Origin: Mizuhopecten yessoensis | Lineage: Eukaryota | Reading direction: 5' to 3' | Assembly: GCF_002113885.1 (NCBI RefSeq) | Contig: NW_018407357.1 | Span: forward strand, 792,591-856,590 | DNA: 64,000 bases | Shown here: positions 29,801 through 58,914 of the stretch, one piece after another | Layout of the letters: each line of letters begins with the position of its first letter | How positions within the stretch are numbered: the stretch's first letter is position 1 | Translations under genes and position numbers: made by a program | The notes under the pieces: generated by a model | What the model was told of the DNA's origin: nothing | The model's input: the letters and a program-made list of their open reading frames with translations, nothing else | Databases searched by the model: none

Positions 29801-30113
29801 GCAGGACGGTCATATGCCCTGACTGGTAATTCAGCACACTTTATGTAGAACCAGTATGTGCACTCTTGTAACTGGTCTATAGATGGCAGTAATGACGCCT
29901 CTGTGGCGCTGAGTACTGTTCACCTGCAGTCTTGGACAGAGAATGGATAAAACAAGTTTTTCTCATCTGGGACGATCTGTCTGCCAATTATCACACAATA
30001 CATATTCGCTACAGTCGTCAAGTTGAAAATTGTCCAAGGTAAAAACTGCCTCTTTCGGATAAAAACTGGTTAAAATGCATAAAAACGTCACAGCCGACAG
30101 AAAGACGGACGTA
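26890..30113 (-). mobile_element. Degenerate CR1/L2-group LINE (PHD-like remnant, AP endonuclease, reverse transcriptase), frameshifted
   Basis: EN motifs ILFIGETKL, LVAGDLNI, PTCF, LSDWH. RT motifs AILMDLSKAFDCLPH, VPQGSILGPLLFNIFI, YADD. C-terminal YGLKSF...VWNSLP...WDG. Split across at least 7 ORF fragments. Confidence 0.93.
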
Positions 30114-30209
30114 CCCACGAAATGATAGTTATGTGACTGCCATATTATGTGACGTTTTTTCTGAAAATTGTGTGACCATATAACTGGTTCTAACGAATTG
30201 ACAGTCATG

Positions 30210-30830
30210 TGACACTGTATGTCCACAATTTATGTGACTCTTTCAATGTCCGTAACTTGTGTGACAATATGTCCACAATTTATGTGACTTTTTCCATGTC
30301 CGTAACTTGTGTGAAACTGTGTCCACAATTTATGTGACTTTTTCAATGTCCCTAACTTGTGTGACAATATGTCCACAATTTATGTGACTTTTTCCATGTC
30401 CGTAACTTGTGTGAAACTGTGTCCACAATTTATGTGACTTTTTCAATGTCCGTAACTTGTGTGACAATATGTCCACAATTTATGTGACTTTTTCAATGTC
30501 CGTAACTTGTGTGACACTGTGTCCACAATTTATGTGACTTTTTCAATGTCCCTAACTTGTGTGACAATATGTCCACAATTTATGTGACTCTTTCCATGTC
30601 CGTAATTTGTGTGACAATATGTCCACAATTTATGTGACTTTTTCAATGTCCGTAACTTGTGTTACAACATGTTCACAATTTATGTGACTTTTTCAATGTC
30701 CGTAACTTGTGTGACAATATGTCCACAATTTATGTGACTTTTTCAATGTCCGTAACTTTCGTGACAATATGTCAACAATTTATGTGACTTTTTCAATGTT
30801 CGTAACTTGTGTGAAACCATGTCTAAAAAT
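30210..30830. repeat. 50-bp subterminal tandem array (gtccacaatttatgtgactttttcaatgtccgtaacttgtgtgacaatat), ~12 copies, decaying to ~31100
   Basis: gtccacaatt at 30221, 30271, 30321...; each unit carries two TGTGAC motifs also found in the TIR. Confidence 0.95.
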
Positions 30831-32680
30831 GTTGTGATTAGTCATGTCCATAAAATATGTGACTCTTTAATGTCCGTATTTTGTGATAACATGTTCATTA
30901 AGTTATGTGACTACATGTATGTACAACTATGTCCATAATGTTGTGTGCCACCTTTTGTCAATAATTTAATGTCTCTTTATGTCCACAATCTGTGAGACTG
31001 TAAATAATTTGTGCATCACTATATGGCCTAAATATTCCCAAAACCTTGTGGGACTGTCTACAATGCTGTATCATTTTATAGAGCTATAATTTTTGTGACC
31101 CATTTTTTCCCCCATTTCTTACTAGTAAATTAAATATTGATCAACTTCATACACGTTGACATATTTATTTACTGCACGTTGACTCATTGTTAATGTCAAG
31201 AATTGCAAAGTTTCCAATGTCAAGACTTTTAAAAGATTTACATTAGCATATTCTGGACATTTTCTTATTCCAGTATTACACTGATTCTTGATCAGGTGGC
31301 AAACAATTGATACATCGTATACTAACCCTGAGACCATCTTTATTGTTATTATCCTGCAATTATTTATTCTACAGAACCTTAACAAAAACAGGACAAATGG
31401 TACATTGTACTTGCAAGCTTTTTATTGTGCAAATTTTGAGGGACATGAATAGGCATGGGCCTATTGCTGGATAACTATAGTATCCGTTCAAGGTCTATTG
31501 GCCAATTAAAGTAGTCTTCTGAGAGACACACATATAGGATGCCGCAGCCATCTTGTTTTTCTCTTTTTATCACACAGATTATATCTGTATACATGTGGGA
31601 GGCAATAATGTGAATGTTTTAAAAAATGACAAAAGCAAAAAATCAATTGTAATTCTTCTACAATTTGTCTTCTATAAAACATGAACCAAAACACTTTTCT
31701 AATTGATTCATTGTTGTTAAATTGTGCAATGCATTATTTCTATTATCATATGCTATTTGGAGCATAATCATGTCATTAAAATTAAGTAATCCAGCAGTAC
31801 CAGGCATTGCAGGATAGTCCTGGACAGCACTGGCAAGCTGTATGTGGCGAAACCAGGCTGTAACTAATACCATCCTGGAAATGGCAGCCACATTTCCTAC
31901 AAAAACTCAAGGAATTTTGGAAATGCACATACAATTGGGACACCATGAAATGTTCCTCTATATAATGCAATCTGCATTAAGAAATTCTGTTTCTTTTGAG
32001 AATTGTTCCAAACAGAATTTAATTCAGATTATGACTCTTTAACATGTACAGACAACACTCTCAACATCTTCAAGCAAACAGTATATGTTGCCATTCAAAC
32101 GATAAAAGCCCAGCAAAATCTGCTGTGTTATTATAATTGGTAACCATTAAGAAGTTATACTTATACAGTAACAACAAGAAATATAGGAATTTATGGAAAA
32201 GGAAATAAAATAAAAAATTAGTCACTACTGCGACATAATGTAAAATCATGTATCTCTTTCATACTAAATGAATGTTAATTATTGTGAAATGCTTTGTATA
32301 GTCAATCAACAGATATATATATATATATGTATATCATCCTTTTACTCCAAATCCAACTCCATAACATCTTTCTGAAATCAAATCTGGTCAATCTACTGCA
32401 TCATCATAACTTGTTGAAATGGAAGCAATATACATAATACTCGAACAGTAAATACAGGATCAAATAAAAAGGTAGAAACAGATCCTTGGGAAAAAGGACA
32501 TCAAATTACCGATTCAGTTACTTCTTGTAACAAAATAAAAATTATGCAAGAAACCATGGATCTTGTGAAAAGCATTAGTTTCTTTTACAGAGAGGTTTTC
32601 AATCAATTTGAAATGGTTTGTTTAGTCCATCAACACAGATATGCAACAATCCCTTCTGCTCAGAGCAGTTATACTTCAGC

Positions 32681-33405: not shown

Positions 33406-36400
33406 TTACTTTGAGTGATTTATGTAGGATATTTTTTTGATGATAAGGTGGTTAGCTCTGAGGTGGAGAACACCATTGGCCTTTTCACTTTTCTTTTTCA
33501 TTTTTTCGATGACAGCTTGCCTGGGAGTTGTTTTTGTTTTTAGAAAATCACTGAAATACTCTTTCAACTCCTTCATTTCTGCAGCTGTCCACCGCTGGCG
33601 AGATACCCTTGGTGTTTTCTCTTTTGCTTCATCCAGTTCGTCTTCTTCCTCGTCTTTTTCCTCTGTGGCCTCTTCATTGGCTGCCTCTTCTGAATACATA
33701 CACTCCTCTGGATCCATGTTTTGTACTGGGATTGATCTAATAGATAGAATTCATACATTGATTTTTCATCTATTATATACATATTTCACAAGTATGGCAG
33801 ATTTTTTACATTTTCATAAATGCGAAGCACGAGTGAAAATATTTTTGAAATCTGCCATATGAGTCAAATATATCTGACATTTAAAGGGAAACCAGTGAAT
33901 TTTCTTTTTCTTACATTAAGGAAGAAAAAATAGAGGACTCAAATTTCAAACAAATCTGCTACAAACAAGGGCGAGGAACGTTGTTTTATTCCAGTCACTG
34001 CTAGAAATCCCTCTCAAACTGATACAAGAAAGTAATTAAATGAAAACCTGTAATGTATACCATATTTTTTTTTCGTGAAAAAAATGATGCAATGTTAGAT
34101 TAGAAATCTTATACCATCACCATGAGGTGATGAAATCAAATAGATATTTTCCTATATTTAATGTAATAAAATAATCATACCATAAAACAAGATACCTAGA
34201 CAGCAAATATCACAAAATGGCATTTTAGCATTATCACACTTGAATTTGATAAGGCAAGCTAAATACTCACAGGTGATCTGAAGAGTGGAGTTGGGTGTCC
34301 GCATCAGGCAACACAAGGTCTGTTATAGAAAGAAAACAAAATCAATGACAAAACTTCTACAGATGTTATTATTAGTTGATCCTCAGTCCTTCCAGTCTTC
34401 TAATGTTCTTTCCCTAATTATTCCAATAGAACAAAAAAGGTACAAAGTGCAAGAGTCAAGTTTCACGTCAATTTCTGAGGATAATCTGTTAAAAATTGTG
34501 CGGTTCAAAATAACAGCACTGGTATCTGACTTTAAATTATTTATTAGAAAGGTCATGAAACAGATCACCATTTAACTGTAGATCACACTTTTCCAATTAT
34601 TATGAATACTTTTTAAGTGCTCTACAAATCATTACCTCTAATGTCAAAATCATCTAGTTTCTGGCCGCGAAATTTGGATGTCAGGTTGAGATCTTGGATG
34701 AGTAGTATCTTGCTGACCTGGGTCTTTTCGACAAGCCCACTCAACTGTCGGTAATGTTCTTTGTGGACCTTTTTTGTATGCCCAAGATGACTGTACACCC
34801 ATTCAAGCTGATTTTTGTCCAAGTTCATCATCTAGAAAGTTCAAATTAATCAGTGCAAATATACAAAGCATCAACATCATTATTCCGTCTTAAACTTCTT
34901 AAGTTAAAAAAAAAAAAAATATTGTTGAAACTGATCTCATGAAATCAAATTCTATGATATTCTGTTTAACAGACAAGTAAATAAATTCAGAATAACATCG
35001 GTTAGGCCATAATAAATTAATTCCTAAATTCTCATCCAATTTTCTTCAAAATCAGGGCAAGGGGAGGGTTTTTGTTCGTTTTTCTAAGAATTTCTTATAT
35101 TCGTAAATACATGTATGTAAAAATTATGAAATAAAAGTATGTTCAGTGTCTGATTCCAGATTCTTTGTCCGGATGTTGGTTCCCTTATTATAAAACAAAC
35201 ATGGCCGACAGCATGTTTATCACACTGCAGCTACTGACTTTTTTGACAGATTAACTTCTTTACCATGATTCTTATGTGAAATAAAAAATATTGAATTGGC
35301 TACAAAGATTGCTACTTTGATGGTCATTATCACTTTCCATGTATTTATATGTTTAGATTTGTTTTACTCCCACTTTAGTCACGGTCAATCAACAACAAAA
35401 ATAGCGATGTTTTACCAGCATGAATAAAACAGAAGCAACTTAATTGAAATTATAATTTAATTATTCTGATGTTTGTTAGAAAATGGAAGTATTTCTCTTG
35501 TGACATGTCATTATTTTGAAAATATTAACAAAATGTATGATTGTGTATAAATGAGGAGATCAGTATTGTATTATAGTCGGTACATTTTCCCAACGAAATA
35601 AAAAAAAAATCCGGGCAGGCCAAAACAGTCAAGGTAGGTAGGCAGGGATGAGAATCTTGGAATTAATTTATTATGGTCTTGCACTCCTGTTGTAGTCCTT
35701 AGAGTTTGTGTCATTCTACAAAAGCATATCCATATTATTCGCTGTAATTAACTACATTGTGTTAATGTTTAACAGTAGAAAATATGTTACCTGAGTCAAG
35801 GTTGCCATGTACTTCCTCATGCTCACAGATGTGATTTTATGTGGTGCGCGTAGATCGAGTTCCCCACAAACAAATCTCAGCGACTCGTATGCCCTGGCAT
35901 AGTGATTCACTGTTAAATACATAAATATAAAAATTGATCCTACGTATTATTCACCTGTTATATCAATTGAAACAAGATTCATTTGTGAAACAATGCCCTG
36001 ACAAGTAACCTTTCACAAAGAATAGGCAAACAAGGCACAGGTTAATATAAATGTTGATGGAATATGACCAATATTAAATAATATCAGATCTTATTAAGAT
36101 AAAGCAATGTCATTTGATGGGATCTCTAAAACAGACAAGACAGACATGTACAGACCAAAAACAATCTGCCTCCTGATCTTCAATCTCAGAGGAGCATAAA
36201 AATTCTGAGCTTTACTTGCATATTTTTGAAGCATGCTACTACAAAAGTACTTCCAAAGGACCCTGGATTATGAACAACCATGGAGCAAGGAAAGCTTACA
36301 TATATGTATACAGTACATCCTACTTGTCATATCAATAATCAAAATCTAAGATAACAGAGTGTGAGGTCAAAATCCAAGGAAGATGTATCCATTACTTCTC

Positions 36401-39400
36401 CAATTGAAGTAACTCAACATGGCAGGAGGAAACACAGTCAAAGATAAACAATAATACATACATTTTTTATGTTGAAGTTTTAATTTTGCTTTCAGGTTTC
36501 ATTTATATCATTACCTGAATTTGGAAAAAGATACGGGTTTCCCTCCACAATGCCAGAACTTCGTCTACCCTTAACCGATGCCAGGAATGCCAGTGCTCTT
36601 TTGGCATCAGGTGGAATTATCACCGGTACAGGTCTTCCTCTCTTGAATGAACAATTTTGAAAAGGAATCATTTAAAATTATGACATCCAGATTATCAAGA
36701 TTGTTATGATGCAGTGTTAGAAAAGTGTGTATAAATTTCATGTCAAATACGCAATTAGCATTTAATATTAGTTATATTTATGACTTAGCAGATAAATTAT
36801 TTGCTCCAATTTCATGCTTCAAGTTGTGTTTCTCTTGGAATGAATAATTTGAAACTTTTCACATCAATATGGTTTTATGTTCTGAATTACATTAATATTG
36901 AGAACTATATATTGTACTGACCAAAGTCTTCCAATGCTGATAGATGTAAATAAACCTTCACCTTCATCAACTCATATAAACTTAATTGTCATTTTTTTTT
37001 ATTCTGCTGATTAATGATTAATTTTGATTGACTGTCTTCATATTTCTTTCATTTTCCTTCCTTATTACAGTATTTATATCCTATCACTTCCATTAACATC
37101 AATAGTATGAACATCTGGGCCAGTATTCCTGAATCTGTACTCGTGCTTATAAGCACAGATTTCATGATCAAATGAATAATTTTGTTACTCACCAAAGTAT
37201 TGTAAAATAATGCAAGTATATATTGCATACATTGAACAGTATATACAAGTGTAGGGTTTGGGCTCTTCAGAATATTTCCCAAAAATTGATATGATTTGCT
37301 TTATTATCAATTCGAAGCAGAAACAAGATATATGCTTAATAATGAGAATGAATTCATGAATACAATCCCTGTTTTAGAATTCATATTTATATCTTTTGCA
37401 TGCATATACTAGTTAGTATATCCATTCCGGACTCAAAACCTTGCTAAGTATAACACATGTTATTACATTTGCCAACTTTTTCTAACCACCATTTTACATG
37501 ATCCCCAACAACATTTTGGAAATAAATCAATAAATCCATGTACTCCTTTGACAATCGGTCTGCCATCAACAGTTCGATAGAATATCCATCTTGCTACATA
37601 AATGTTAACCTTGTATTTTACCTTTCCTCGCACTCGAAGGAATTCCTGCGATTCTAGCAAATGCTTTTCTACAGGTGAAAGGTCAGACTCGAGGGACTCA
37701 TCAATACCATCAGAGGGCTTGCTTCTTGAGGCATAACACTGAAGCCTGTGTAAATAAAACATTATTTTGTATATTAACATTACCTATCAACTCCATTAAT
37801 GTAACAAGAGGCCCCAACAGCTTTAAAAGTCACCCCAAGTACATACAGTAAACCCCCACATAACTTTCAAAGCAATACAATGTATTTCAAACAACTTTCA
37901 GACTGAATCAAATACAATGCATTTGCAGATAATCAATCTACTACAGTTGGACCTCATAAGTGGAAACAGGAAACATGAACATATTCACAGCAAATTTTAA
38001 AAACGATGATTAATAATGAACATACAAGAGATCCCAGAGGGATCTTGGTGCCGACCATCGTTTGATCTTTATTTGTTCTTTAAAAACTTAGACCTTTTTC
38101 CTTCTATTCTCTTCTTTCCTTGTTTTTCCTCTACGATATAGAAATAATCATTAAACTGTCAAATCTAGGATGGTTCCCTGCTCGTTTGTTTTTCTTTCAG
38201 TGTCCAAATCAAAAGGGCACATTTTAAGACTAAGAGGAACCTACATATGAAATTTGAGAATGAACCATCCAGTACCTTTCAAGAAATAGTGGTACAAAAA
38301 TTGTTCAAGGATGGACAGACAACAGAGACCACAGCCGAAGGGGGATTTGAATACCCCTCCATTTGATGATGAGGGCTAAAAATCAATACAACAGCATACA
38401 TTTTAAAGTCAGAAATAGCCATGTGGAATTATCACTCACTTGATGGTTTCAACCTCTCCTGATCTCCGCTTGTTGTAAAGCAGTATTCTGGCTTGGCATA
38501 GGGCAACTAATCTCCTGAAATTATCTGCAACAAGTTCTAGATGGTCAAGTTCTTTCCTCAGGTATTTTGTGATTTGTTCAATGTCCTTCGGAGAGGGAAG
38601 TTCATTTTTATATTCATATTTCCTACGTGCCAACACCAATCGAGCAAACCTTGTTACTCTTTCCTCCCATTCCAAGTCCATCAGTGCTAGCAATGTCTTG
38701 CAATTTTTTGCTTCCTCGTCATCTGCAGATCCATTTTTTACTATCATAGCCCACTTACTATTGATAAGACGATGCAGGTCGTATTTTAACATAATAGCAT
38801 TGCTAGGGGCAAGCAAATCATCCTCGTCATCTGCATTAGGAATTGCACATTTTATTGCAGCTAAAACAATATCATCAAAATGGTTGGGCTTCAGATAATG
38901 CCATAACCCTTTGGAATCATCTGCTTTTGGGACAAGTGCCTCACACTTAACATCCCCGTCTCCCTCATCATCATCTCCTTCTTCTAGATAAGTCTTTTCA
39001 TCCTTGTTAGACTTTGTATCTCTAAGGGCAAGGAGAAGCCTTGCACATAGCCTCATTCTGGAACTTGCATAATACTTTCTTTTTTCAACATTTCCTCTGT
39101 TACGCCTTAACCAACTTTCTCCCAGTGCCATTACAAGTGGATCATTTTGGGCAGTTTGGGACATCACATCCCTGGTCATAATTGGCAGAACTTCTTTACT
39201 CATGAGTGATGATGGTTCATCCTTGAGATGGCCAGCTAAAACCTGAGCTTGAAACACCAGGTCTTTCCTTCGCATCTTTACAGTGTTTTTTTCATGGCTT
39301 TGGCAATGTCTATAATGAAGCTTTAAATGATCCAACATAACCCATTCCCTACAATTAGGGCAGGGACCATAATCTGTGACATCAAACTTCCCCTTTGGCC

Positions 39401-40083
39401 GCCTGGCCAGGATAATTTCTCCCTGTTTCTTTTCCACGCATTTCCTGTTATGACGGTCGTCTCCGAACTTTCTCAATGATGTAAAATTAGGCTGATCACT
39501 TTTGAGAATGTCTTTAACCATGTCTTGGTTTCTGTGTGTTTTCAAATGTTCCTTTATGTGTAGCACAACTTTCTCACAAAAGTAGCAAGCATGACGGTTG
39601 TCATAAATTCTTACACCTCTACTCTGACCTTGATTCATTTTGTTTTTTTTTATTTTGTATGTTTTAATGTAAAGGGAGCTACTATTAATATCCCGGGTAA
39701 TGTTATCGTCTTCCAAATCAGAGCTTGAATCTTCAGGTCGACATCTCTTCTTAGAACCTGTATCACATATGCCATCTTCATGCTGATCAGCGCCAGGGCC
39801 TCTATGCCTTTTCTCCTTTGAATCTCTGTCACTGCTGTTGTTGTCATCTTCATGCTGATCAGAGCCAGGACCTCTATGTCTTCTCTTCTTTGAATCTCTG
39901 TCACTGCTGTTGTTGTCATCCTCATACTGATCAGAGCCAAGACCTCTATGTCTTCTCTCCTTTGAATCTCTGTCACTGCTGTTGTTGTCATCCTCATACT
40001 GATCAGAGTCACGACCTCTATGCCTTCTCTCCTTTGAATCTCTGTCACTGCTGTTGTTGTCATCCTCATACTGATCAGAGTCA
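33406..40083 (-). CDS. Spliced tyrosine recombinase (Crypton-like YR) with N-terminal zinc fingers and C-terminal Myb/SANT-like tail; 5' part runs into the N-gap
   Basis: Phase-consistent GT-AG exons: >40083-38440, 37745-37622, 36641-36515, 35909-35791, 34831-34636, 34319-34271, 33736-33406 (stop). Motifs: CYFC..HLKTH, CPNC..HYRHC, LYNKRRSGE (catalytic R), VRGK|RGRPVPV (K), ITSVSMRKYMAT (xxxR), HLGHTKKVHKEHY (H, nucleophile Y), RQRWTAAEMKELKEYF. No stops across the seven exons. Confidence 0.9.
35003..35680. mobile_element. Intronic MITE with ~35-bp TIRs
   Basis: taggccataataaattaattcctaaattctcatcc vs ggatgagaatcttggaattaatttattatggtctt. Confidence 0.7.
39770..40083 (-). repeat. 72-bp coding tandem repeat (EDDNNSSDRDSKERRHRGxGSDQY), at least 4 copies, in frame with the YR exon
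   Basis: 72-nt periodicity; this frame is open and continues into LEDDNITRDIN of ORF 38436-39716. Confidence 0.85.
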
Positions 40084-40683
40084 NNNNNNNNNNNNNNNNN
40101 NNNNNNNNNNNNNNNNNNNNNNNNNNNNNNNNNNNNNNNNNNNNNNNNNNNNNNNNNNNNNNNNNNNNNNNNNNNNNNNNNNNNNNNNNNNNNNNNNNNN
40201 NNNNNNNNNNNNNNNNNNNNNNNNNNNNNNNNNNNNNNNNNNNNNNNNNNNNNNNNNNNNNNNNNNNNNNNNNNNNNNNNNNNNNNNNNNNNNNNNNNNN
40301 NNNNNNNNNNNNNNNNNNNNNNNNNNNNNNNNNCCCCCCCCCCCCGGCGGAAAGTGTGGGACCTCGTCTTAACTAGAGGGAAGGGAGAATCGCCGGATTA
40401 CTGACCTGACGCATTTGCCTGTGTTTGGTTATACATACTTTCTTTGCCAGAAAGAAAATTATCAAAGACAGGAAATTGATTGGAAAAAAAATCTAAATAG
40501 AAATAAGTCTGGAAGACAAATCATGACAGTGCTCATGAATGTTTCCTTACACTTTAATTGTACGCATTTTAAGTAAACTGTAATCGGTGAAATAGCCATC
40601 ATCTCTACTAGGCGATAGTTGTCATTTTTTATTATACATTCACACAAAGGGTATGTATGGTTACAATGTACTTGGTGTTTGAT

Positions 40684-43600
40684 CTACATAAATTGTTTAA
40701 CCGTTTCACCACTGCAGATCATAATGTATTCATTCACATCAAACTTCTTGAAACGTACATGTATATATTCAGTAATTGGTTGAACAGCAAAACATGTGAG
40801 CGAATCAATGATCCATTCCCTGCAAACAGCATTGATACTGTATTCTTCATAGACCTCTGAAAAAGTAATGGCAAAAGTAAAAAATGAGCATTGAAAATTG
40901 TAATAACAGTTAAAAACTAATTTATTTTGTAAGTTTTTGATAAAATTTAAATGTTGGTATAATTATTCAAATTGAATTTCTTCAGTGTTGAAAATGGACA
41001 AAATATATTGTTAAGTTTCATAATCTTTTACAAGTCAATACTATAGCATAATTTGATCCCTCCCAATGGAATTGGTTAGTTTCTGAAAATTGTCAAATTA
41101 AAATCTATAAGCATAGCAAAATACAATAAATACAATCTCTTACTTTTCACTGCATTTCTTTCTCCTGGAGATAAAACATTCATTTCTTCACCCTCATGGC
41201 TATAGCATGTGACAATCACAGAATCATGACACACATCTGATGCACCAATGACTGTACCTCCACAAGCCATAATCAACTTTGTTATGTCATCTGAAATATC
41301 AATGAACAGCATGAGTACCATTACTCCATTAGTACTTTTTACTAATTTTCATATACCTAATATTGTTTAAATAGAATTCCATGGAAGTGGATGTGTCGCC
41401 TGCAAAGCAAGCTGGGAGATTATGAAGAAAATGATAAAATTCTCATCATAGTGATAACTATATGTCACCTTTTGCAGGCGACACAAAAATGAGTCACACA
41501 ATGTTATATATCCAAGCATTTTCATAATTTATTTTAGATTTTTCCAGGTACTGTATTGAAAGAAGTTCGAACCAAGGCAACTATATTATCAGAAATTGGA
41601 AGACAAATCAGATCTATACGTGTGAATTATTTGATGAAATTAGTAATAGACTTCCAGGTCATCCTAAAATATATAAAGTTTGTCAAATTAATGTCGGTGG
41701 CATTCTGATCTCTTCAACAGCATTTATGGTCAGGTTGTAAATGAAAAATGTTATCTAAAAGTGGAGGACCTAAAAACTAGTACAAATCATAGTCGTTTTA
41801 TCACACTACATACTGTTAAATGTACTCAAAGATTATAATATGAATACTGAGACTAATTCATTTTTACTAATATCTTTATCCTTACCTTTTGTTAGATCTT
41901 CAGCCTGTCCAATGAGGTGGATATTGAAACCTTTTAGTAGCAGACTAGACTTTGTCCGTGATAGATAGGGCCCATTATGCATCTCAATGGTGCCAGTATC
42001 ACCAATAACCTCGTAGTTTTTCTGCCAAGAAAAATAGCTAGGTTAAAAACAAAATGAAACCACTACTTTAATGCTTAATTCCATTCTGACAAATGCTATT
42101 GTGATAAAAAGTATTTTTCTTGGAATTTTCAATCTTCATGTACATATTTATTTATAACCTCTTAGGCTAAACCACAAAAGATAACAAGTTCATTTCATTC
42201 ATGAATCTGTAGCAAGCAAGTGATGGCTTTCATATATATAGGCAACAGAGAAATGTGTAGCATTAATGAGTTATCTTACCTCTGATTGGCGAATTCCTTT
42301 ACTTCCTGAATCTCTTATCCATTGGAGATTTACAATAAAAACATGGTGTGCAATTGCTTGTAAAAATTTCAGACTTCTGTCACACATTCTGCATTCTTCA
42401 GGTTCTACAATTCAAGGGTGAATTGACAGTTTAATATCATCATGTTAAACACGCATTTTAAAAAAAAATTCTCTCACAAATTTAGTTAGTTATGCAGATT
42501 AAAACTGAATTGACTATTCAATGGTGTAATGATCCAACATAATTAGAATTTTAATATTGCTCTGAAGTTTCTAGATTTAAATCAAGTATTCAACTTATTG
42601 ACAAAATGTCATTTATCCATTTCATACCTGTTTTTATGACAAGATGGGTGATTTTTGGGTGAAAGGAATGAGAAAATCCCCAACCGAACGTTCGGCACAC
42701 ATTTTTGACATCTTCCTGCAGTTATGACAAAAACACCTATATCAGTAGACAGCACAATGTATGCATATATCAATATACTACCACAGCTTTCTGATCACGT
42801 TGAAAAAAAATACTCTCAAGAATGTCGCTATTTTTTATTTAAAAAAGTGCAAAAGACAAAAATCAAGGCATTACACAAAAAACAGATGCTTATCAGACTT
42901 CATACTTGAAACAAAAACTAATGTACATGTACATGTAATACAATATTATCATGTCAACATGTTCACATGAACCATATATCAGGTTGACAAAATTAGCTTT
43001 ATTAATAGAAATTCACTTAAAAAAATCATAATCACTCAATATTATAACCTCCAAACATAATGGCAGAAAGGTCTTGCCTTATTTCTTTGTTTTTGCTTGC
43101 TACAAAGGCTATATTTACTTGATTTTATCACAAGCTTGTTCAAACCTGTTGTGATTGGTTCAGTCCAGAAGTCAAAATTATGGTAGGGGACTGGACCTCA
43201 GTGCCTGTGGTAGGCAACTGGTCCTCAGTGCCAATGGGAGGGGACTTGTCCTCGGTGCCTGTTGGAGGAGACTGGTCCTCATGATCAGTGCCTGTTGGAG
43301 GAGACTGGTCCTCAGTGCCTGTTGGAGGAGACTGGTCCTCATTGCCAATGGGAGGGGACTGGTCCCCAGTGCCTGTTGGAGGAGACTGGTCCTCAGTGCC
43401 TGTTGGAGGAGACTGGTCCTCATTGCCTGTTGGAGGAGACTGGTCCCCAGTGCCTGTTGGAGGAAACTGGTCCTCATTGCCAATGGGAGGGGACTGGTCC
43501 CCAGTGCCTGTTGGATGAGACTGGTCCTCAGTGCCTGTGGTAGGAAACTGGTCCTCAGTGCCTGTTTGAGGGGACTGGTCCTCAGTGCCTGTGGTAGGAG

Positions 43601-44216
43601 ACTGGTCCTCAGTGCCTGTTGGATGAGACTGGTCCTCAATGCCTGTTGGAGGGGACTGGTCCTCAGTGCCTGTTGGATGAGACTGGTCCTCAATGCCTGT
43701 TGGAGGGGACTGGTCCTCATTGCCAATGGGAGGGGACTGATCCTTGGCGAAAGGATGGTGAGACTGACATTCTGTGGATAGTCAATAAATAGTTTATTAT
43801 TATTACATTCTTAACGGCCCGTCAATACATAAAAGGTCATTAGGACCATCAAATAGGGTACAACAAAAAGACTTAAAAGGAAATCACATCAAATAACTAA
43901 AGACTAACAAAACACTTTTTCCATGTAATCCAGAATTTTGTGTATTTAAGTTTCAAAAAGAACTTGTCACATTACGATAAAAATGTTCTCAAATAGACAG
44001 GAAGTCGATGAAGTCCAACTCTTAGCTGGAATATTTATTGTATGGAATAAAGATGACTCCTGCTCTCAGTTCAAAGTTTTCAAATGTACTTTGAATAAAA
44101 TGGTTCTTGGACTTTGGCAGTTCAGTAAACAAGACCACTGAAGTTAAATGTACCTTTGAAACAGGATAGGTCCTCCTCAAACAAGGACTTCAAATGTTTT
44201 CTCTTCTCAAGATATT
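40684..44216 (-). CDS. Spliced BRCA1-like tandem BRCT protein region (separate gene or N-terminal part of the YR protein)
   Basis: Phase-consistent exons 44216-44154, 43771-43146, 42715-42628, 42404-42280, 42021-41886, 41290-41144, 40856-(40684 stop or earlier donor). Translation: IILTSGLNQSQQ|EDVKNVCRTFGWGFSHSFHPKITHLVIKT|EPEECRMCDRSLKFLQAIAHHVFIVNLQWIRDS..SE|KNYEVIGDTGTIEMHNGPYLSR..LLKGFNIHLIG..LTK|DDITKLIMACGGTVI...AVCREWIIDSLTCFAVQPITEY. Confidence 0.85.
43185..43745 (-). repeat. 27-bp coding tandem repeat (EDQSPPTGT)x~20 inside exon 43771-43146
   Basis: Splice-phase-defined frame is open; the one indel (6 nt at ~43281) preserves frame. Confidence 0.85.
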
Positions 44217-46966
44217 CTGGAAGTGAAAATTGATTGATTTAGCATTTATTTCTTTAGTGAATAGAACTAGTTTGAAATGGGGCTTGTTAGTCCAATAAAC
44301 TAGGGTTTCACAATAGTATTTCATACCCAGTGTAGGATTAGAATAATTGCCCACTGTCTTTGTACTAATTGGGCTATTAATAAGGGAAAATCCTGTTGGT
44401 TGAAATTAAAGGGACATCACGTGAAAAGGCATTTTTTTTAATGAATGTATGTATTGTATGCACTTCCACTTATGTTACCTCGCTATCCCCATATTCATAG
44501 TCTGTTCCAAATGTCCAGTTTGACCACTTGAGTTGTTCGGGAAAGCCCTGCTAAAAATAGCGCCGATAACGTCACCTGACTAGGCAGTAAACACAAGTGG
44601 TGCGAGCGAGATGAAACAGTTTCCAAAGGGGCCCCCAGAGAGGGGCTGTCAGGACTTAGATAATCCATGGACTTAGATAATACGCTGTGGGCTATAACAA
44701 CTTCTTACCGCACTATGAAACCAAGTTATATGATTTCTAAGTCTGTATTCAAACTTATTGAACAGTAATTATTCATCATTAGAAGTTAATTGCACACTTG
44801 CCAATATTCAGAATTTAAATTTATTTAGCTTTAAACATAAATTTGTTGCCAATAAAATTAAACAAGGGATGGGGCACAAGTTTTTACAATTTATCACAGC
44901 CTTCTCCCGTCATACATTTACAATTAAATGTNNNNNNNNNNNNNNNNNNNNNNNNNNNNNNNNNNNNNNNNNNNNNNNNNNNNNNNNNNNNNNNNNNNNN
45001 NNNNNNNNNNNNNNNNNNNNNNNNNNNNNNNNNNNNNNNNNNNNNNNNNNNNNNNNNNNNNNNNNNNNNNNNNNNNNNNNNNNNNNNNNNNNNNNNNNNN
45101 NNNNNNNNNNNNNNNNNNNNNNNNNNNNNNNNNNNNNNNNNNNNNNNNNNNNNNNNNNNNNNNNNNNNNNNNNNNNNNNNNNNNNNNNNNNNNNNNNNNN
45201 NNNNNNNNNNNNNNNNNNNNNNNNNNNNNNNNNNNNNNNNNNNNNNNNNNNNNNNNNNNNNNNNNNNNNNNNNNNNNNNNNNNNNNNNNNNNNNNNNNNN
45301 NNNNNNNNNNNNNNNNNNNNNNNNNNNNNNNNNNNNNNNNNNNNNNNNNNNNNNNNNNNNNNNNNNNNNNNNNNNNNNNNNNNNNNNNNNNNNNNNNNNN
45401 NNNNNNNNNNNNNNNNNNNNNNNNNNNNNNNNNNNNNNNNNNNNNNNNNNNNNNNNNNNNNNNNNNNNNNNNNNNNNNNNNNNNNNNNNNNNNNNNNNNN
45501 NNNNNNNNNNNNNNNNNNNNNNNNNNNNNNNNNNNNNNNNNNNNNNNNNNNNNNNNNNNNNNNNNNNNNNNNNNNNNNNNNNNNNNNNNNNNNNNNNNNN
45601 NNNNNNNNNNNNNNNNNNNNNNNNNNNNNNNNNNNNNNNNNNNNNNNNNNNNNNNNNNNNNNNNNNNNNNNNNNNNNNNNNNNNNNNNNNNNNNNNNNNN
45701 NNNNNNNNNNNNNNNNNNNNNNNNNNNNNNNNNNNNNNNNNNNNNNNNNATTACATTTTTTCCAAATCAAATTCATCACTGCCAATTAATCTACTCTTGT
45801 ACTGAATTAACACAGCTAGGGCATTCAATTAAATCCTTGAGAGTATAGTTTTGACTCTTCACAAAAATGACATTTGATTCCTGCGTCTGAAGGGAAATGT
45901 TGATTTAACATACATTTGGATCCTGTATTACCCATGAAATTACAAAATCTTAAGGGTCAAATGCATGCACAGTAACACTAGAACAAAAAACACGGTAAAA
46001 CAGAAAACTATTTAAATCAAACAATGAACAAAACATTGAAAACAATTCATTAAAGCCTCTCTATGTTTTTGTAACATAAAACTTATGACAAAATTACCAA
46101 TATATGATAAATGATAGAATAATAACCCTAATGACGATATGATATGAGAATAAATATCATAGTTTTCCATAATTGCAATTAAGACTGGGAAACTCCACTC
46201 TGATAACAGGAATCCACATTTGCAGTGCACAGCTAGCTCTATATGTAAATTACCCGTAGAAACTATGTCAAACATTCATGTGCAGATGGGTTTGATTTGA
46301 AGAATGACGGACTTGCGATCAAAGCCACAACTCAGACGAACAAAATTGGACGTCCTTACTGATGCTGCGAAGGCAAAGAAAACAGAATGGACACAAGCAC
46401 AGCATTATCTGCGAATTACATAATCGATGTGGGTCCATTGGACAAAATTAAAGGAAGAAGTTAATGTGAAAAGCCACGATGAATTGGCGGCGACACTTCT
46501 GGACATTTGTAAACAAACACCATGTGCAGTTCGCTATTTACTTTCAACTTTCTCTCGTAATAGCGTACGTTTTGTAAACTTTTTAATGAAGCGCACAATT
46601 TTGTTTAAGCAATAAGTTTATTATTTTATAATAAACCTTTGTGTCCTGTACTTTACATTGTACAATAACGAATAACTCACCGCCTGCTCAAAACTTCTCT
46701 CCCTGTCATCTATGTCTTTCTGTTTACCATCACGGGATGTAAAATCGGCGAGCACATATTACGTATTTTTAGATACACAAATTGACCAGGTCTATTTTTA
46801 GATATTTCTTACATATTTTACTTATTGATAACTACGTAACAGTTCAGGTTTGAGGGAAATTAAAATATGAAAACTCCATTGAGGATGATGAAGTTTTGTT
46901 TGAAAAAGTTTTATTTGTACATGCATAAATAAAAACATAGAGAGGCTTTAACAAAATTATATATAC

Positions 46967-50400: not shown

Positions 50401-50684
50401 CGCGTCAAGAGAACCCTTGACACAAGAGGCGGCTAACCAAATACGGGAGTACGGTAAATGGAACAAGGGAGATAACCCCTACAATATGCGATACGGACGT
50501 CTAAAATATGGGGAAAAAATGTCTGTAAAATTATGTGACGGATCTCTGATTTTTGTGTGTGTCACATAACAACCATTTCTACGCACTTTAACACTAATAT
50601 CCTATGTGACTGTCACACAATTCTGAAAGGTCACATAACTGTGATATGGGCACAAATTCGGTCACATTACTACTATTTCGTGTG

Positions 50685-50720
50685 AACATCTGAACTTGCC
50701 GCCATCTTGCCGGGTATCCC
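50685..50720 (-). mobile_element. Probable detached 5' tip of the LINE
   Basis: Minus strand reads ggcaagatggcggc (YY1-type motif common at LINE 5' ends), immediately outside the right TIR and co-oriented with the LINE. Confidence 0.5.
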
Positions 50721-52959: not shown

Positions 52960-53360
52960 CTAGGGGCTGTATATCCACCCGAAATGTCAACGAGAGAGCG
53001 GCTAGGGGCTGTATATCCACCCGAAATGTCAACGAGAGAGCGGCTAGGGGCTGTATATCCACCCGAAATGTCAACGAGAGAGCGGCTAGGGGCTGTATAT
53101 CCACCCGAAATGTCAACGAGAGAGCGGCTAGGGGCTGTATATCCACCCGAAATGTCAACGAGAGAGCGGCTAGGGGCTGTATATCCACCCGAAATGTCAA
53201 CGAGAGAGCGGCTAGGGGCTGTATATCCACCCGAAATGTCAACGAGAGAGCGGCTAGGGGCTGTATATCCACCCGAAATGTCAACGAGAGAGCGGCTAGG
53301 GGCTGTATATCCACCCGAAAGTTCAACGAGAGAGCGGCTTGGGGCTGTATATCCACCCGG
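52960..53360. repeat. 42-bp near-perfect minisatellite (ctaggggctgtatatccacccgaaatgtcaacgagagagcgg), ~9.5 copies
   Basis: Direct periodicity. Confidence 0.96.
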
Positions 53361-54437
53361 ATGTAAGCCTGTTTTGTTAATGGATAAATTATTTTTGGTT
53401 GAACTTTGACGACCCCTGCCCAAAATCTAAAATATTTTCCCTCTCCCCATGATCGACACATTAAGGTGGCTTCTTATTACAAGTGAACAATAGGGAGTTG
53501 CTCACGTTATGCTAACTAGTGTGATGTCAATAAAATACATTTGTTTGTGTTTATGTTGCGTTTGACAAAGAATTAGACGATGTGGTGAGGTAGGTCTGAC
53601 ATGTTTACAGATGTGAACACCACGCCTAGGTGTGCAATGTAATGATAGCTGTGGTTTGGTTGACGCCTCGTATGAATACTAAATGAAGCGACGTGCATAC
53701 TAATGCAGTATGTGGTGTAAGGGTCTAATTAGTGTCCCAGACACTTGTGCTCGACAAAGATGTGAAATATGATTAATAACATTGCAATATAGCTAGTCTG
53801 CGTCTCAAACATTCCTCTTTTGGTTACTAATTTGACGGGAATTTCATATAATTATTTAGCAAGGAAAATTGTTTAACCCCGTACAACTTTTTTTACAAGA
53901 TGAGTTAGGTTCTGCTGCAGCAAAAGCCCACTTTCAGTCCAGGAATATATATCTATATTTTTAATATATTGATGTATTGAATATAAGATAAAATGTCTAA
54001 CGATGTACAAGCCCCTAACATTTGATAAATCATTTAGCATGAATTCCCACTACAGGTGAGGAGTTACTCTTACTGAAAAAACCCGGCTGTTGATACCACG
54101 TCTATTCTGTGAATATCGGCGTTTATATATTATATAAGCAATATAGTGTTTAAGCAATGAAATATGTTCATATCACATTAGTCATAATGCAAAAATAAAA
54201 TGCACACACCTCAACTTGACAACTAAAACATTGAATAAATCATAATTTAGTGACCCAAGCTGCAAACAAGGGTGTTTATCATGTGTGGTTCTCTCAACCA
54301 AATACAAACGCCGGTGATATAACCAGGACTTGTGTGCATTATTCAAAGCACATGTTGGACACATGCACCAAAGGTAGACTTATTGTCTTGTCAACGAAAT
54401 CAGGTAAGTCGCTGTGGATAAATTCCATTTGGATTGA

Positions 54438-55231
54438 AGTACATAGCTATACTGATATCACGTGTCTGATTGGTGTTTTACTATATCTGAGGTACAAAAG
54501 CTGTACTGATATCACGTGTCTGATTTGTGTTTTACTATATCTGAGGTACAATAGCTGTACATATATCACGTGTCTGTTGGTGTTTTACTATATCTGAGGT
54601 ACAAAAGCTGTACTGATATCACGTGTCTGATTTGTGTTTTACTATATCTGAGGTACAATGGCTATACTGATATCACGTGTCTGATTGGTGTTTACTATAT
54701 GTGAGGTACAAAAGCTGTACTGATATCACGTGTCTGATTGGTGTTTTACTATATCTGAGGTACAAAAGCTGTACTGATATCAAGTATCTGTTGGTGTTTT
54801 ACTATATCTGAGGTACAATAGCTATACTGATATCACGTGTCTGATTGGTGTTTTATTATATCTGAGGTACACTAGCTATACTGATATCACGTGTCTGATT
54901 GGTGATTTACTATATCTGAGGTACACTAGCTATACTGATATCACGTGTCTGATTGGTGTTTACTATATGTGAGGTACAAAAGCTGTACTGATATAACGTG
55001 TATGATTGGTGTTTTACTATATCTGAGGTACAATAGCTGTACTGATATCACATGTCTGATTATATGTTACTCTATCTGAGGTACAATAGCTGTACTGATA
55101 TCACATGTCTGATTGGTGTTTTACTATATCTAAGGTACAATAGCTATACTGATATCACGTGTCTGTTGGTGTTTTACTATATCTGAGGTACAATAGCTAT
55201 ACTGATGTCACATGTCTGATTGGTGATTTAC
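54438..55231. repeat. 54-bp satellite (ctgaggtacaatagctatactgatatcacgtgtctgattggtgttttactatat); resumes at 61914-62020
   Basis: ctgagg at 54487, 54541...; both pieces abut single-N joins. Confidence 0.95.
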
Positions 55232-56971: not shown

Positions 56972-58075
56972 TCATCTTCGTAGATCAGTTGGGGTTTTAC
57001 AGATGGTTACATTGGGTGATCCAAAGAACCACTGATGGATATCGTCATACAATCTACGATACCGTGTGTAGACATCGGGCCGGTGCATTCGATTACAAAG
57101 CTCACAGAACGAGTAATAAGCATCAGATCGAGGCTGGTAATGTCTTCTCCATTTGAAATACTTTAAATATAATGTTTCGTTTTTGTTGAGGTGATTTAAA
57201 AAATGTCCTAGTTGGTCAATGTTTTTGTAATTACTGGTATCTATAAATGACTCCGGCGGTAGATATAAGGAATAATGTCCACCAATACCACGGGTTATGG
57301 GAACAGTGTCAAATTCATTTTGAAATATTTTAAAAGTCTTTTCCGTGATGTAATCCCTACATAAGGAGTTTTCAAATGACAAATAAAACTTGTATGGCGT
57401 TAGACATCCGTGTTCCTTACCCCTAGCACACCTACTGGTACCACAAACTCCAAATATATCTACAGCATGCGTGTTTCTGAGAGCTGTTACGTACTCCTTT
57501 CTTTTGCTCTGTGTCTGACAATGGGAAACAAACCAAGCTGTGGGATGAGCTTTATTCTTCGGCTTAGGAGGCATTGTCGAATTGTGTACAGATGCAAATT
57601 TAAATGTTGTGTTTGGTAGCCGCGCTGACGGGTTAGGAACAGTTCGGAACTCTCCGTACATATGAGGAAAATCCGAATCTCTGCGATACGTCATTGTCCA
57701 ATTAAAAAGTCTCTTCCATTTTTGGATATGATTGTGCTGTGGTGGTGCCTCTTTACCATGAAGAACCCATATTTGTCCTCGTCTCTTCTTCACCGGTTTT
57801 GGACCAAGACGTGGGCCGAAGAAAATCACCACATCTTTATCGTAATAGTCCTGACCTCGTCCAACCGACATAGAACAGTTACTTGGACATCCTCGGAACA
57901 CGTTGTATCTGCTGAACCATTCGGGAGGGTTGTAAAAGTGCATATGAACTTGCCGTGGTTGTGGCATTCCATGGACTGACATCATTTTTGGGAGGACTGA
58001 CATGCCCTCCGACTCTATAATGATGTATGTTAGTACAGAAGAGGCAATGAAGATCATCAACAAAACCGTAGCCAT
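56972..58075 (-). CDS. Alpha-1,3-fucosyltransferase (glycosyltransferase family 10), type II membrane protein, single coding exon
   Basis: 367-aa ORF; N-terminal TM anchor; Glyco_tran_10_N-type motifs EAP and FNWTMTYRRDSD; AWFVSHC; signature YKFYLSFENSLCRDYITEK; FCELC. Acceptor tttcag just upstream (exon starts at 58082). Confidence 0.96.
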   Translation of the reverse strand: MATVLLMIFIASSVLTYIIIESEGMSVLPKMMSVHGMPQPRQVHMHFYNPPEWFSRYNVFRGCPSNCSMSVGRGQDYYDKDVVIFFGPRLGPKPVKKRRGQIWVLHGKEAPPQHNHIQKWKRLFNWTMTYRRDSDFPHMYGEFRTVPNPSARLPNTTFKFASVHNSTMPPKPKNKAHPTAWFVSHCQTQSKRKEYVTALRNTHAVDIFGVCGTSRCARGKEHGCLTPYKFYLSFENSLCRDYITEKTFKIFQNEFDTVPITRGIGGHYSLYLPPESFIDTSNYKNIDQLGHFLNHLNKNETLYLKYFKWRRHYQPRSDAYYSFCELCNRMHRPDVYTRYRRLYDDIHQWFFGSPNVTICKTPTDLRR

Positions 58076-58914
58076 AACAAACCTGAAAATATAAAGTAAA
58101 GACAGATTTTAATATCGTATAACGTAAAGCTATGTTCATTAGTTTCCTATGTCCTTAATATTTTAAGAAAAAAAAAAAATCGCTACTATCGACATGCTAC
58201 ACTATTGTTTCTCCTGATTTAACAGATTGATAGATGGCACAACCTCGGATTTGTCGATTATCATGTATAACTCGAACTCATGATGTGGACCCCTCTGGTT
58301 CGTGTTAACGAGGTTTTACCATATACGTGGGAGACTGGATGGATAAGTAAGGTACCAAGGATCTCTACTACTGCACTGCCGTTTTTCCTGTATATGGTAG
58401 CCATCCCCCTTTACCGCCGTTTGGATATATCTGTAACACATTTGAGTTTGTAAACTTCCGTTGTCCATGTAGCTCAACCGCTTTCACTGATGGTATCGTA
58501 ACATCTGAGGTACAGAGTTTGAATCTCGGTTCGGAACCGCAGAATATTTCAAACTCAGAACACGTTTGTCGATTATTTTTTGTCTATTTTATCTCCATTA
58601 TGCTTGAATACTTGAAACTACATTACACTTAATTGAGGGTCTTATTCTGCTCTTGTAACTATGCCTGGCATTTTTCACCTGTGAGACAGAATACATAAAT
58701 GTTAGCCTATATCTGCTCGCCAATACTTAACATGATCTTCGACATCAGTATTTTATGGAAATCCTCGTGATATAATTTCATATTTTATACACTATATACA
58801 ACTGTATAAGATTGGAGAAAAGGGTGTACCCTTCAGATTGAATTTTGTAAAATAGGGTAGTTGATGTGACAATAAGGATTTATAAACAGGTGAATTGTGT
58901 TGCTTTTTGATGAA

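Follow-up and report, generated by a model that had tools for sequence, protein, structure and literature searches.

Why should the last exons of a BRCA1-type gene stand in front of a tyrosine recombinase (YR) in a scallop genome? The question is raised by a stretch of 64,000 nucleotides (nt) of AT-rich animal DNA from the Yesso scallop Mizuhopecten yessoensis (contig C4030:792591-856590, hereafter the window), which belongs to an assembly of 988 Mb in 82,659 contigs. On its minus strand, six exons encoding two BRCT repeats are followed, head to tail and about 600 nt further on (250 nt of which are an N run), by a multi-exon gene with the motifs of a YR. We consider it probable that the six exons are a BRCA1-derived tandem-BRCT module of a bivalve YR gene family, captured at the DNA level, and that they would likely couple the recombinase, through binding and targeting, to damage signals.

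A BRCA1-type BRCT pair encoded by six exons

The first-pass annotation of the window described six short exons that encode two BRCT repeats; they lie on the minus strand and are here called A to F (Table 1). This description is borne out: the hallmarks TSGL, THLV, CDRSLKF, W, YEVIGD..HNGP..SR, CGG and REWIIDS are all present, every exon has an AG acceptor, exons A to E have GT donors and the phases are mutually consistent. The exact spliced product of the locus exists as a public protein of 518 amino acids (aa), P0001, named 'Breast cancer type 1 susceptibility protein-like [Mizuhopecten yessoensis]' by NCBI, and the public annotation closes its gene at the stop codon of exon F. When exon F was searched exhaustively, P0001 was the sole protein returned; in two word-index searches the BRCT pair had no relative among proteins of 134-906 aa, longer ones, full-length BRCA1 included, being out of their reach. 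For the first 95 residues of P0001, no relative was found in Pfam, in the PDB, in the genome or among the SET-bearing recombinase relatives described below.

A profile search with the spliced peptide, proposed at first pass, gave Pfam BRCT at 1.8e-16 (two stretches) and BRCT_2 at 3.2e-8. Among PDB sequences, P0001 is closest to BRCA1 (1.3e-13 for rat, about 4e-12 for human, overall to 4e-11), well ahead of BARD1 (4.7e-4), MDC1 (3e-3) and TopBP1 (0.2), and the BRCA1 alignment spans both repeats plus the linker; by these scores, the domain groups with BRCA1 and not with unrelated BRCT domains. These strong scores derive from the database protein and not from single exons, with which the Pfam and PDB searches gave marginal values (in Pfam, exon C reached 0.0025 for BRCT and exon E 0.014 for BRCT_2). 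An AlphaFold2 model of the pair, built from a three-row alignment, had a mean predicted local distance difference test score (pLDDT) of 34.

The C-terminal tandem BRCT of BRCA1 is a reader of phosphoserine-x-x-Phe motifs. The residues of its phosphoserine pocket were proposed to be retained here, and they do align with BRCA1: TSGL corresponds to VSGL (S-G), and CDRSLKF, in helix 2, to CERTLKY (R for the +3 contact, S standing for T1700, and K). The R-[ST]-x-K motif is invariant in five of five aligned sequences, whose overall identity is about 30%. The three element copies in which the exon tail was read (the window, C5364:136-145 kb and oyster) all retain the S-G loop. Both features argue that the BRCT module is used. 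The scallop's own BRCA1 carries T-G at the position of this loop. The module is also RING-less, as first described: a pattern scan detected no RING anywhere in the window, and Pfam none in P0001.

The host BRCA1 gene and the origin of the module

A genome search with the BRCT pair led to a locus on contig C2051 that holds, on one strand and within at most 25 kb, a RING half (5e-6 to BRCA1 RING chains), central exons of 841 aa and 979 aa and a C-terminal BRCT pair. This gene is the real BRCA1 of the Yesso scallop, so that the objection that the window might hold the sole genuine BRCA1 locus fails. It might still be argued, from the BRCA1-like product name given by NCBI and from the 818-nt N run upstream of exon 3, that the window gene is the genuine BRCA1 with missed 5' exons. 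However, there is no RING in the window, a fucosyltransferase gene bounds the BRCT region upstream, and the window module is only 34-36% identical to the complete BRCA1-type gene on C2051; we give this explanation practically no weight.

The structure of the two genes was then set side by side, loci other than the window's being compared exon by exon with the counts summed. All five introns of the BRCT region have the same position and phase in the window gene and in the scallop BRCA1. The exon lengths (window/C2051) are 88/88, 125/125, 136/136 and 147/156 nt, and a lysine codon is split A/AG before the last exon in both genes. The human BRCA1 exon that starts at c.4987 in phase 0 is likewise 88 bp long (PMC13515063). 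The intron placement noted at first pass as BRCA1-like therefore holds in comparison with the scallop gene and with this human exon.

Since the introns are retained, the copy was made from DNA and not from mRNA; since the protein identity to the host gene (exon-wise alignments) is only 34-36%, the module is an old copy of the BRCA1 3' end. Judged from these alignments and exon borders, the BRCT module is BRCA1-derived and was copied together with its introns. The DNA-level capture of the BRCA1 3' end suggested by the first-pass annotation is thus supported, and the capture is old and family-wide rather than a recent event at the window locus.

Recurrence of the BRCT-recombinase pairing

Across the 988 Mb genome, profiles of exons C and D have matches at four kinds of locus only, namely BRCA1 on C2051, the window with its twin on contig C4995, C5364:136-145 kb and C5364:98-105 kb. 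Each of the non-BRCA1 loci is closely followed, on its own strand, by a YR paralogue. Both loci on C5364 have intron-bearing BRCT exons followed by the recombinase paralogue. At C5364:136-145 kb, a proline-rich repeat array ending in ..PSGLNHDQQ at the exon border precedes exons of 88, 125 and 136 nt, and the BRCT2 frame continues directly into the acidic linker of the YR, interrupted by a single frameshift and a single stop. The unit at C5364:98-105 kb has a strong donor behind BRCT2 and an acceptor of matching phase, which would permit splicing in frame to an intact YR frame of 784 aa.

In oysters the two parts are found in one chain. The gene models P0015 (Saccostrea cucullata) and P0013 (Magallana gigas, named 'BRCA1-like') both encode BRCT, BRCT_2, a zinc-finger region, the YR and a Myb-like tail. 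The BRCT pair of P0015 is BRCA1-type (5e-16, vs 9e-7 for BARD1), and its gene keeps the intron pattern, with an internal exon F that is spliced after ..SDYL to a 2.1 kb recombinase exon. Exon F of the window has a possible internal donor (..TEYIH followed by GTACGT) at this oyster splice point. A relative from Mya arenaria retains a faint remnant of the BRCT pair. The association with a recombinase, noted at first pass for the window, thus recurs at two more loci of the genome and in fused oyster proteins; scallop and oysters share the link between the BRCT module and a tyrosine recombinase.

A simple partial BRCA1 duplicate lying by chance beside an unrelated recombinase gene would agree with the public annotation, which stops the BRCT gene within exon F, and with the lack of a joint transcript among the RNA contigs. 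But the same order and orientation is found at two highly divergent loci and in the fused oyster proteins, and no BRCA1-type BRCT exon outside BRCA1 occurs without a YR neighbour, which makes such a coincidence very improbable.

As a separate observation, the region C5364:98000-145000 carries two divergent BRCT-recombinase units about 40 kb apart on one contig. For the unit at 136-145 kb, C3615 carries a twin of 96-99% identity, and the similarity between them stops inside the recombinase gene.

The recombinase gene and its family

The YR gene was traced from open segments with GT/AG borders (Table 1). Its relatives form a large family across molluscs, fishes, echinoderms and hemichordates, some members of which are named 'integrase' by their sources. 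A structure was predicted for the family from a 39-row alignment (pLDDT 75.6), the modelled protein being a paralogue from C5364 and not the window protein. In Foldseek, about 30 top matches of this model were XerH, XerA, XerD, lambda Int, Cre, integron integrase and topoisomerase IB (probability 1.0, E about 1e-3, template modelling score 0.3-0.4). The family model thus has a tyrosine-recombinase fold. Moreover, the GKRGR, LRK, GH and H-R-x-x-Y columns are invariant or nearly so in the 39 family members. The window YR carries RGRPVPV, SMRKYMAT and HLGHT..H..Y as its R..R..H..Y motifs, to which catalytic roles may be assigned by analogy. DUF3504 had no match among the YR proteins in Pfam.

The paralogues are old (22-47% identity); several keep long open frames, and many family copies carry stops. 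In fishes, sea cucumber and ark shell, YR relatives have a SET domain at the N-terminus (P0055, P0056, P0064, P0095 and others), one of them also a THAP domain. In an oyster (L040:2165-5714), a SET-domain gene model stands directly upstream of the BRCT-recombinase gene. Together, these two observations suggest that N-terminal modules are exchangeable within the family.

At the start of the window YR frame, a 72-nt tandem repeat (39773-40080) encodes 24-aa acidic/basic repeats, and RNA contigs break there.

Table 1. Features of the window, in window coordinates
Feature	Position	Strand	Description
Exons 1 and 2 of P0001	47435-47299, 47028-46967	-	N-terminal part, public gene model
N run	44932-45749		818 nt, upstream of exon 3
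Exon 3 of P0001	44154-44216	-	public gene model; junction to exon A supported by RNA
Exon A	43771-43146	-	626 nt; 3' tail encodes TSGL; AG/GT borders
Exon A repeat array	43185-43744	-	about 20 x 27-nt unit encoding 9-aa TGTEDQSPP, then ..TIILTSGLNQSQQ
Exon B	42715-42628	-	88 nt, phase 0 to 1; ends ..THLVIKT
Exon C	42404-42280	-	125 nt, phase 1 to 0; CDRSLKF..W with R, S/T and K pocket residues
Exon D	42021-41886	-	136 nt, phase 0 to 1; inter-BRCT linker YEVIGD..GP..SR
Exon E	41290-41144	-	147 nt, phase 1 to 1; start of BRCT2 (CGG)
Exon F	40856-40684	-	173 nt; end of BRCT2 (REWIIDS) and tail to TAG
Stretch absent from C4995 copy	40581-41215		its loss takes away the end of exon E and the whole of exon F; also absent from RNA contigs of two runs
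N run	40084-40333		250 nt between exon F and YR frame; YR frame open up to its edge
YR gene	33409-40082	-	multi-exon, downstream of the BRCT exons on the same strand; open segments and GT/AG borders
YR exon 1	40082-38441	-	acidic 24-aa repeats, zinc-finger region, ..RRSGEVETIK
YR further coding pieces	about 37702-37610; 36671-36495 (RGRPVPV); 35946-35755 (SMRKYMAT)	-	open segments, GT/AG borders
YR last coding pieces	about 34831-34625 (HLGHT..H..Y); 33750-33409 (Myb-like tail)	-	open segments, GT/AG borders
Left block end	30113-30137		ACC-CACGAAATGATAGTTATGTGAC; 19/22 positions match the reverse complement of the right end
Subterminal ATGTGAC array, left	30131-30905	+	units of about 100 nt; the motif occurs 17 times, in one orientation
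Subterminal ATGTGAC/GTCACAT motifs, right	50533-50661		beside the right block end
Right block end	50664-50688		inverted-repeat partner ..GTCACATTACTACTATTTCGTG-TGAACA

A 20.6 kb block present twice

A 20.6 kb block (30113-50688), bounded by imperfect terminal inverted repeats, contains both the BRCT exons and the YR gene. ATGTGAC, the motif repeated beside both block ends, occurs 39 times in the whole window, vs about 8 expected. A second copy of the block, 95-99% identical to the window, was found at C4995:1-26958. It begins opposite window position 50688, at scaffold base 1, and the similarity ceases exactly at 30113, the next 23 kb of C4995 being unrelated; this flank is composed of other repeats. 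The block termini occur only twice genome-wide, with none beyond the window and C4995, and apart from the C4995 twin the window locus is single-copy at the DNA level. The other open reading frames of the block contain no transposase domain, and ends of the ATGTGAC type are absent around the other BRCT-YR loci within the stretches examined.

These features fit a large element present twice, and the block may also be a segmental duplication or a rearranged allele. We had considered the C4995 copy as a haplotig and withdrew this assignment, the similarity ending at the inverted-repeat end and the flank being unrelated; because this flank is repetitive, the two copies may still be allelic. The placement of the module inside a mobile element, as put forward in the first-pass annotation, is therefore upheld in part: the module does lie in a twice-occurring block with inverted-repeat ends, and the case for mobility is drawn from two copies only.

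Outside the block, the window contains two tandem arrays, one of a 42-nt unit in 9.5 copies that are 99% identical (52960-53359) and one of a 107-nt unit in 7.4 copies (54435-55231). The fucosyltransferase gene just outside the block (56975-58108, minus strand) is intronless and encodes an alpha-1,3-fucosyltransferase of 378 aa (Pfam Glyco_transf_10 4e-49 and the N-terminal domain).

Transcription of the locus

The RNA evidence consists of contigs from three RNA-type runs of three studies. In these contigs the splice junctions between exons 3 and A (two runs), A and B (two), B and C (three) and C and D (three) are seen. A form lacking 40581-41215 is transcribed with intron D/E retained (joint 40599 to 41216; two runs). 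The exon 3 acceptor is joined to 28 letters foreign to the window, and in run X3 the upstream partner of exon 3 differs from the annotated exon 2 of P0001. The YR gene is covered by RNA contigs of 3.4 kb, which end at 39828-39841. Between the window and the C4995 copy, 5 of 1917 coding nt differ in the recombinase exons, vs about 2.4% in the surrounding DNA; the YR gene is expressed and constrained.

Two stretches within the BRCT gene also have signal in the RNA data. An 85-nt short dispersed repeat in intron D/E (41363-41446), with at least 35 genome copies at 84-91% identity, is abundant in RNA contigs, with a depth of up to about 340 in run X3. The stretch 44395-44931, in the intron between exons 2 and 3 beside the N run, has an RNA depth of 100-1100 in contigs, with many variants, and is also covered by raw reads of run X21; it is probably an expressed repeat family.

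Weighing the evidence

Several observations weigh against a captured module that serves an active recombinase. On the recombinase side, the best Pfam score for Phage_integrase (PF00589) was 24.7 bits (P0031) vs a cut-off of 27.1, this model had no match among the scallop YR proteins, and the YR family profile retrieved no tyrosine recombinase from PDB sequences. On the side of mobility, only two copies of the block are present, no target-site duplication was seen in the sequences flanking the block ends, and one end of the second copy is a scaffold start. The second copy itself lacks exon F, carries Phe for the pocket Ser (with three more amino-acid changes in exon B) and has a 1-nt insertion just before the putative catalytic HLGH..Y motif that shifts the YR frame, so that the unit can decay. 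In the RNA contigs, neither the D/E nor the E/F junction is found, the depth of exon F is zero in the three runs, and the exon D donor continues into 28 letters found nowhere in the assembly. In the window, exon F closes with a stop codon and the N run at 40084-40333 makes any BRCT-YR joint unreadable. Lastly, the pairwise identities form a star around BRCA1 that does not separate one capture from several.

Some of these points could be explained if the window copy were a decaying relic, whose module makes no working tandem BRCT and whose transcripts end or splice elsewhere past exon D. The retention of intron D/E, the foreign letters joined to exon D, the gap in RNA coverage beyond it and the transcription of the deletion form without exon F would all agree with this, as would the 5 nonsynonymous changes, vs 1 synonymous, that separate the BRCT exons of the two copies and include the pocket Ser. 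In contrast, the module reading frame of the window copy is intact, with open frames, splice signals and hallmark residues kept through exons E and F, and exons C, D and the shared part of E show 0 differences in 336 nt between the copies. The contigs, moreover, have a low depth (7-19) and prove presence, not absence. We thus regard decay of the window copy as unlikely.

Another explanation is that the bivalve BRCT-YR genes are a domesticated host gene family, low in copy number and immobile, in which case a segmental duplicate or a structurally divergent haplotype, and not a transposon, would account for the 20.6 kb block. The single twin of the locus and the two occurrences of the block termini agree with this, and so does a YR gene that has several introns, is expressed and differs about tenfold less in its exons than in its surroundings; the paralogues are old, and several keep long open frames. 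It is opposed by the boundary of the two-copy similarity, which falls exactly at an inverted-repeat end with subterminal motif arrays, by the decay of the twin copy, by the stops in many family copies, and by a patchy, multi-phylum and multi-copy distribution in which some members are called 'integrase'. On balance, domestication seems rather doubtful to us. We favor a BRCA1-derived module captured by a YR gene family.

A possible role for the captured module

Under this reading, the ancestor of the family would have acquired the 3' end of BRCA1 in the form of genomic DNA, a piece that starts with the exon for the S-G pocket loop, extends to the last exon and includes the introns. This piece would have been placed in front of a reading frame for the zinc-finger region, the YR and the Myb-like tail, and in the oyster gene models the BRCT and YR parts are spliced into one protein. 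The ligand of the BRCT pair would be a phosphoserine motif on a protein of the DNA-damage response or of replication, and this binding might recruit the recombinase to such sites or make its activity dependent on checkpoint signalling. In a comparable way, a chromodomain targets some retrotransposon integrases, and mobile elements are known to borrow chromatin readers for the choice of landing sites. A decoy role of the BRCT pair is possible but less likely, because the BRCT-YR fusion is conserved.

A broader proposal, which we advance tentatively, is that animals harbor YR elements with interchangeable host-derived reader or writer modules at the N-terminus (a BRCT pair in bivalves, SET in fishes, sea cucumbers and ark shells), the BRCT pair coupling recombination or integration to DNA-damage signalling.

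Significance and comparison with known systems

If this proposal is true, it would provide the first example of a mobile-element enzyme that follows a phospho-reader captured from DNA repair, and new host repair factors might originate from it. By means of the BRCA1 phosphoprotein reader, a recombinase would be connected with the DNA-damage response; the searchable literature describes no such coupling and nowhere links BRCT domains with Crypton-type or other tyrosine-recombinase elements. The case also shows that a disease-relevant domain is reusable outside its own gene, and the family offers natural, highly diverged BRCT pairs for studying the requirements of the pocket. In practice, "BRCA1-like" database names in molluscs do not mark BRCA1 orthologues.

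The closest known system for the module is the tandem BRCT of BRCA1 (PDB 1JNX, 1T15, 1L0B), which is the best sequence match of the window pair and shares with it the S-G and R-[ST]-x-K of the pocket, as well as intron positions and phases in the scallop gene and the 88-bp human exon. Unlike BRCA1, the window gene has neither a RING nor a large central exon, its BRCT pair has diverged to 34-36% identity from that of the host, and upstream of this pair lie an unrelated N-terminus and a 9-aa repeat array, downstream of it a recombinase gene.

For the recombinase, Cryptons and other eukaryotic YR elements are alike in having a YR-fold protein with R..R..H..Y, a low copy number, divergent lineages, introns and a patchy distribution among animal phyla (Kojima and Jurka 2011, PMC3212892). 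Cryptons are marked by a DUF3504-type YR and by short direct repeats at their ends, and those of animals are described as having neither terminal repeats nor extra domains (PMC3212892). The scallop family differs from them by the absence of a DUF3504 match and of an above-threshold Phage_integrase match, by the inverted-repeat ends of the block, and by its N-terminal BRCT pair (SET in some relatives), zinc-finger region and Myb-like tail. The block resembles a DNA transposon with terminal inverted repeats, of the CACTA-like kind, in its 19/22 matching ends and subterminal ATGTGAC arrays, and departs from one in that neither a target-site duplication nor a transposase domain was found and in that only two copies exist.

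Independently of the scallop family, ZMYM3 also connects Crypton-type proteins with the BRCA1 pathway: this vertebrate Crypton-derived (DUF3504) protein is reported to regulate BRCA1 localisation at damaged chromatin (PMC5358723). ZMYM3 differs from the scallop protein in being a catalytically dead, domesticated protein without BRCT, for which the link is functional and involves no fusion.

Finally, the arrangement has precedents in mechanism. As with the chromodomain of chromovirus integrases, a recombination enzyme bears a reader domain of host origin, and as in gene capture by Pack-MULEs, Helitrons and CACTA elements, host exons were taken up together with their introns. What sets the scallop and oyster genes apart from these targeting modules and captured genes is the nature of both partners, a reader of DNA-repair phosphoproteins placed on a tyrosine recombinase.

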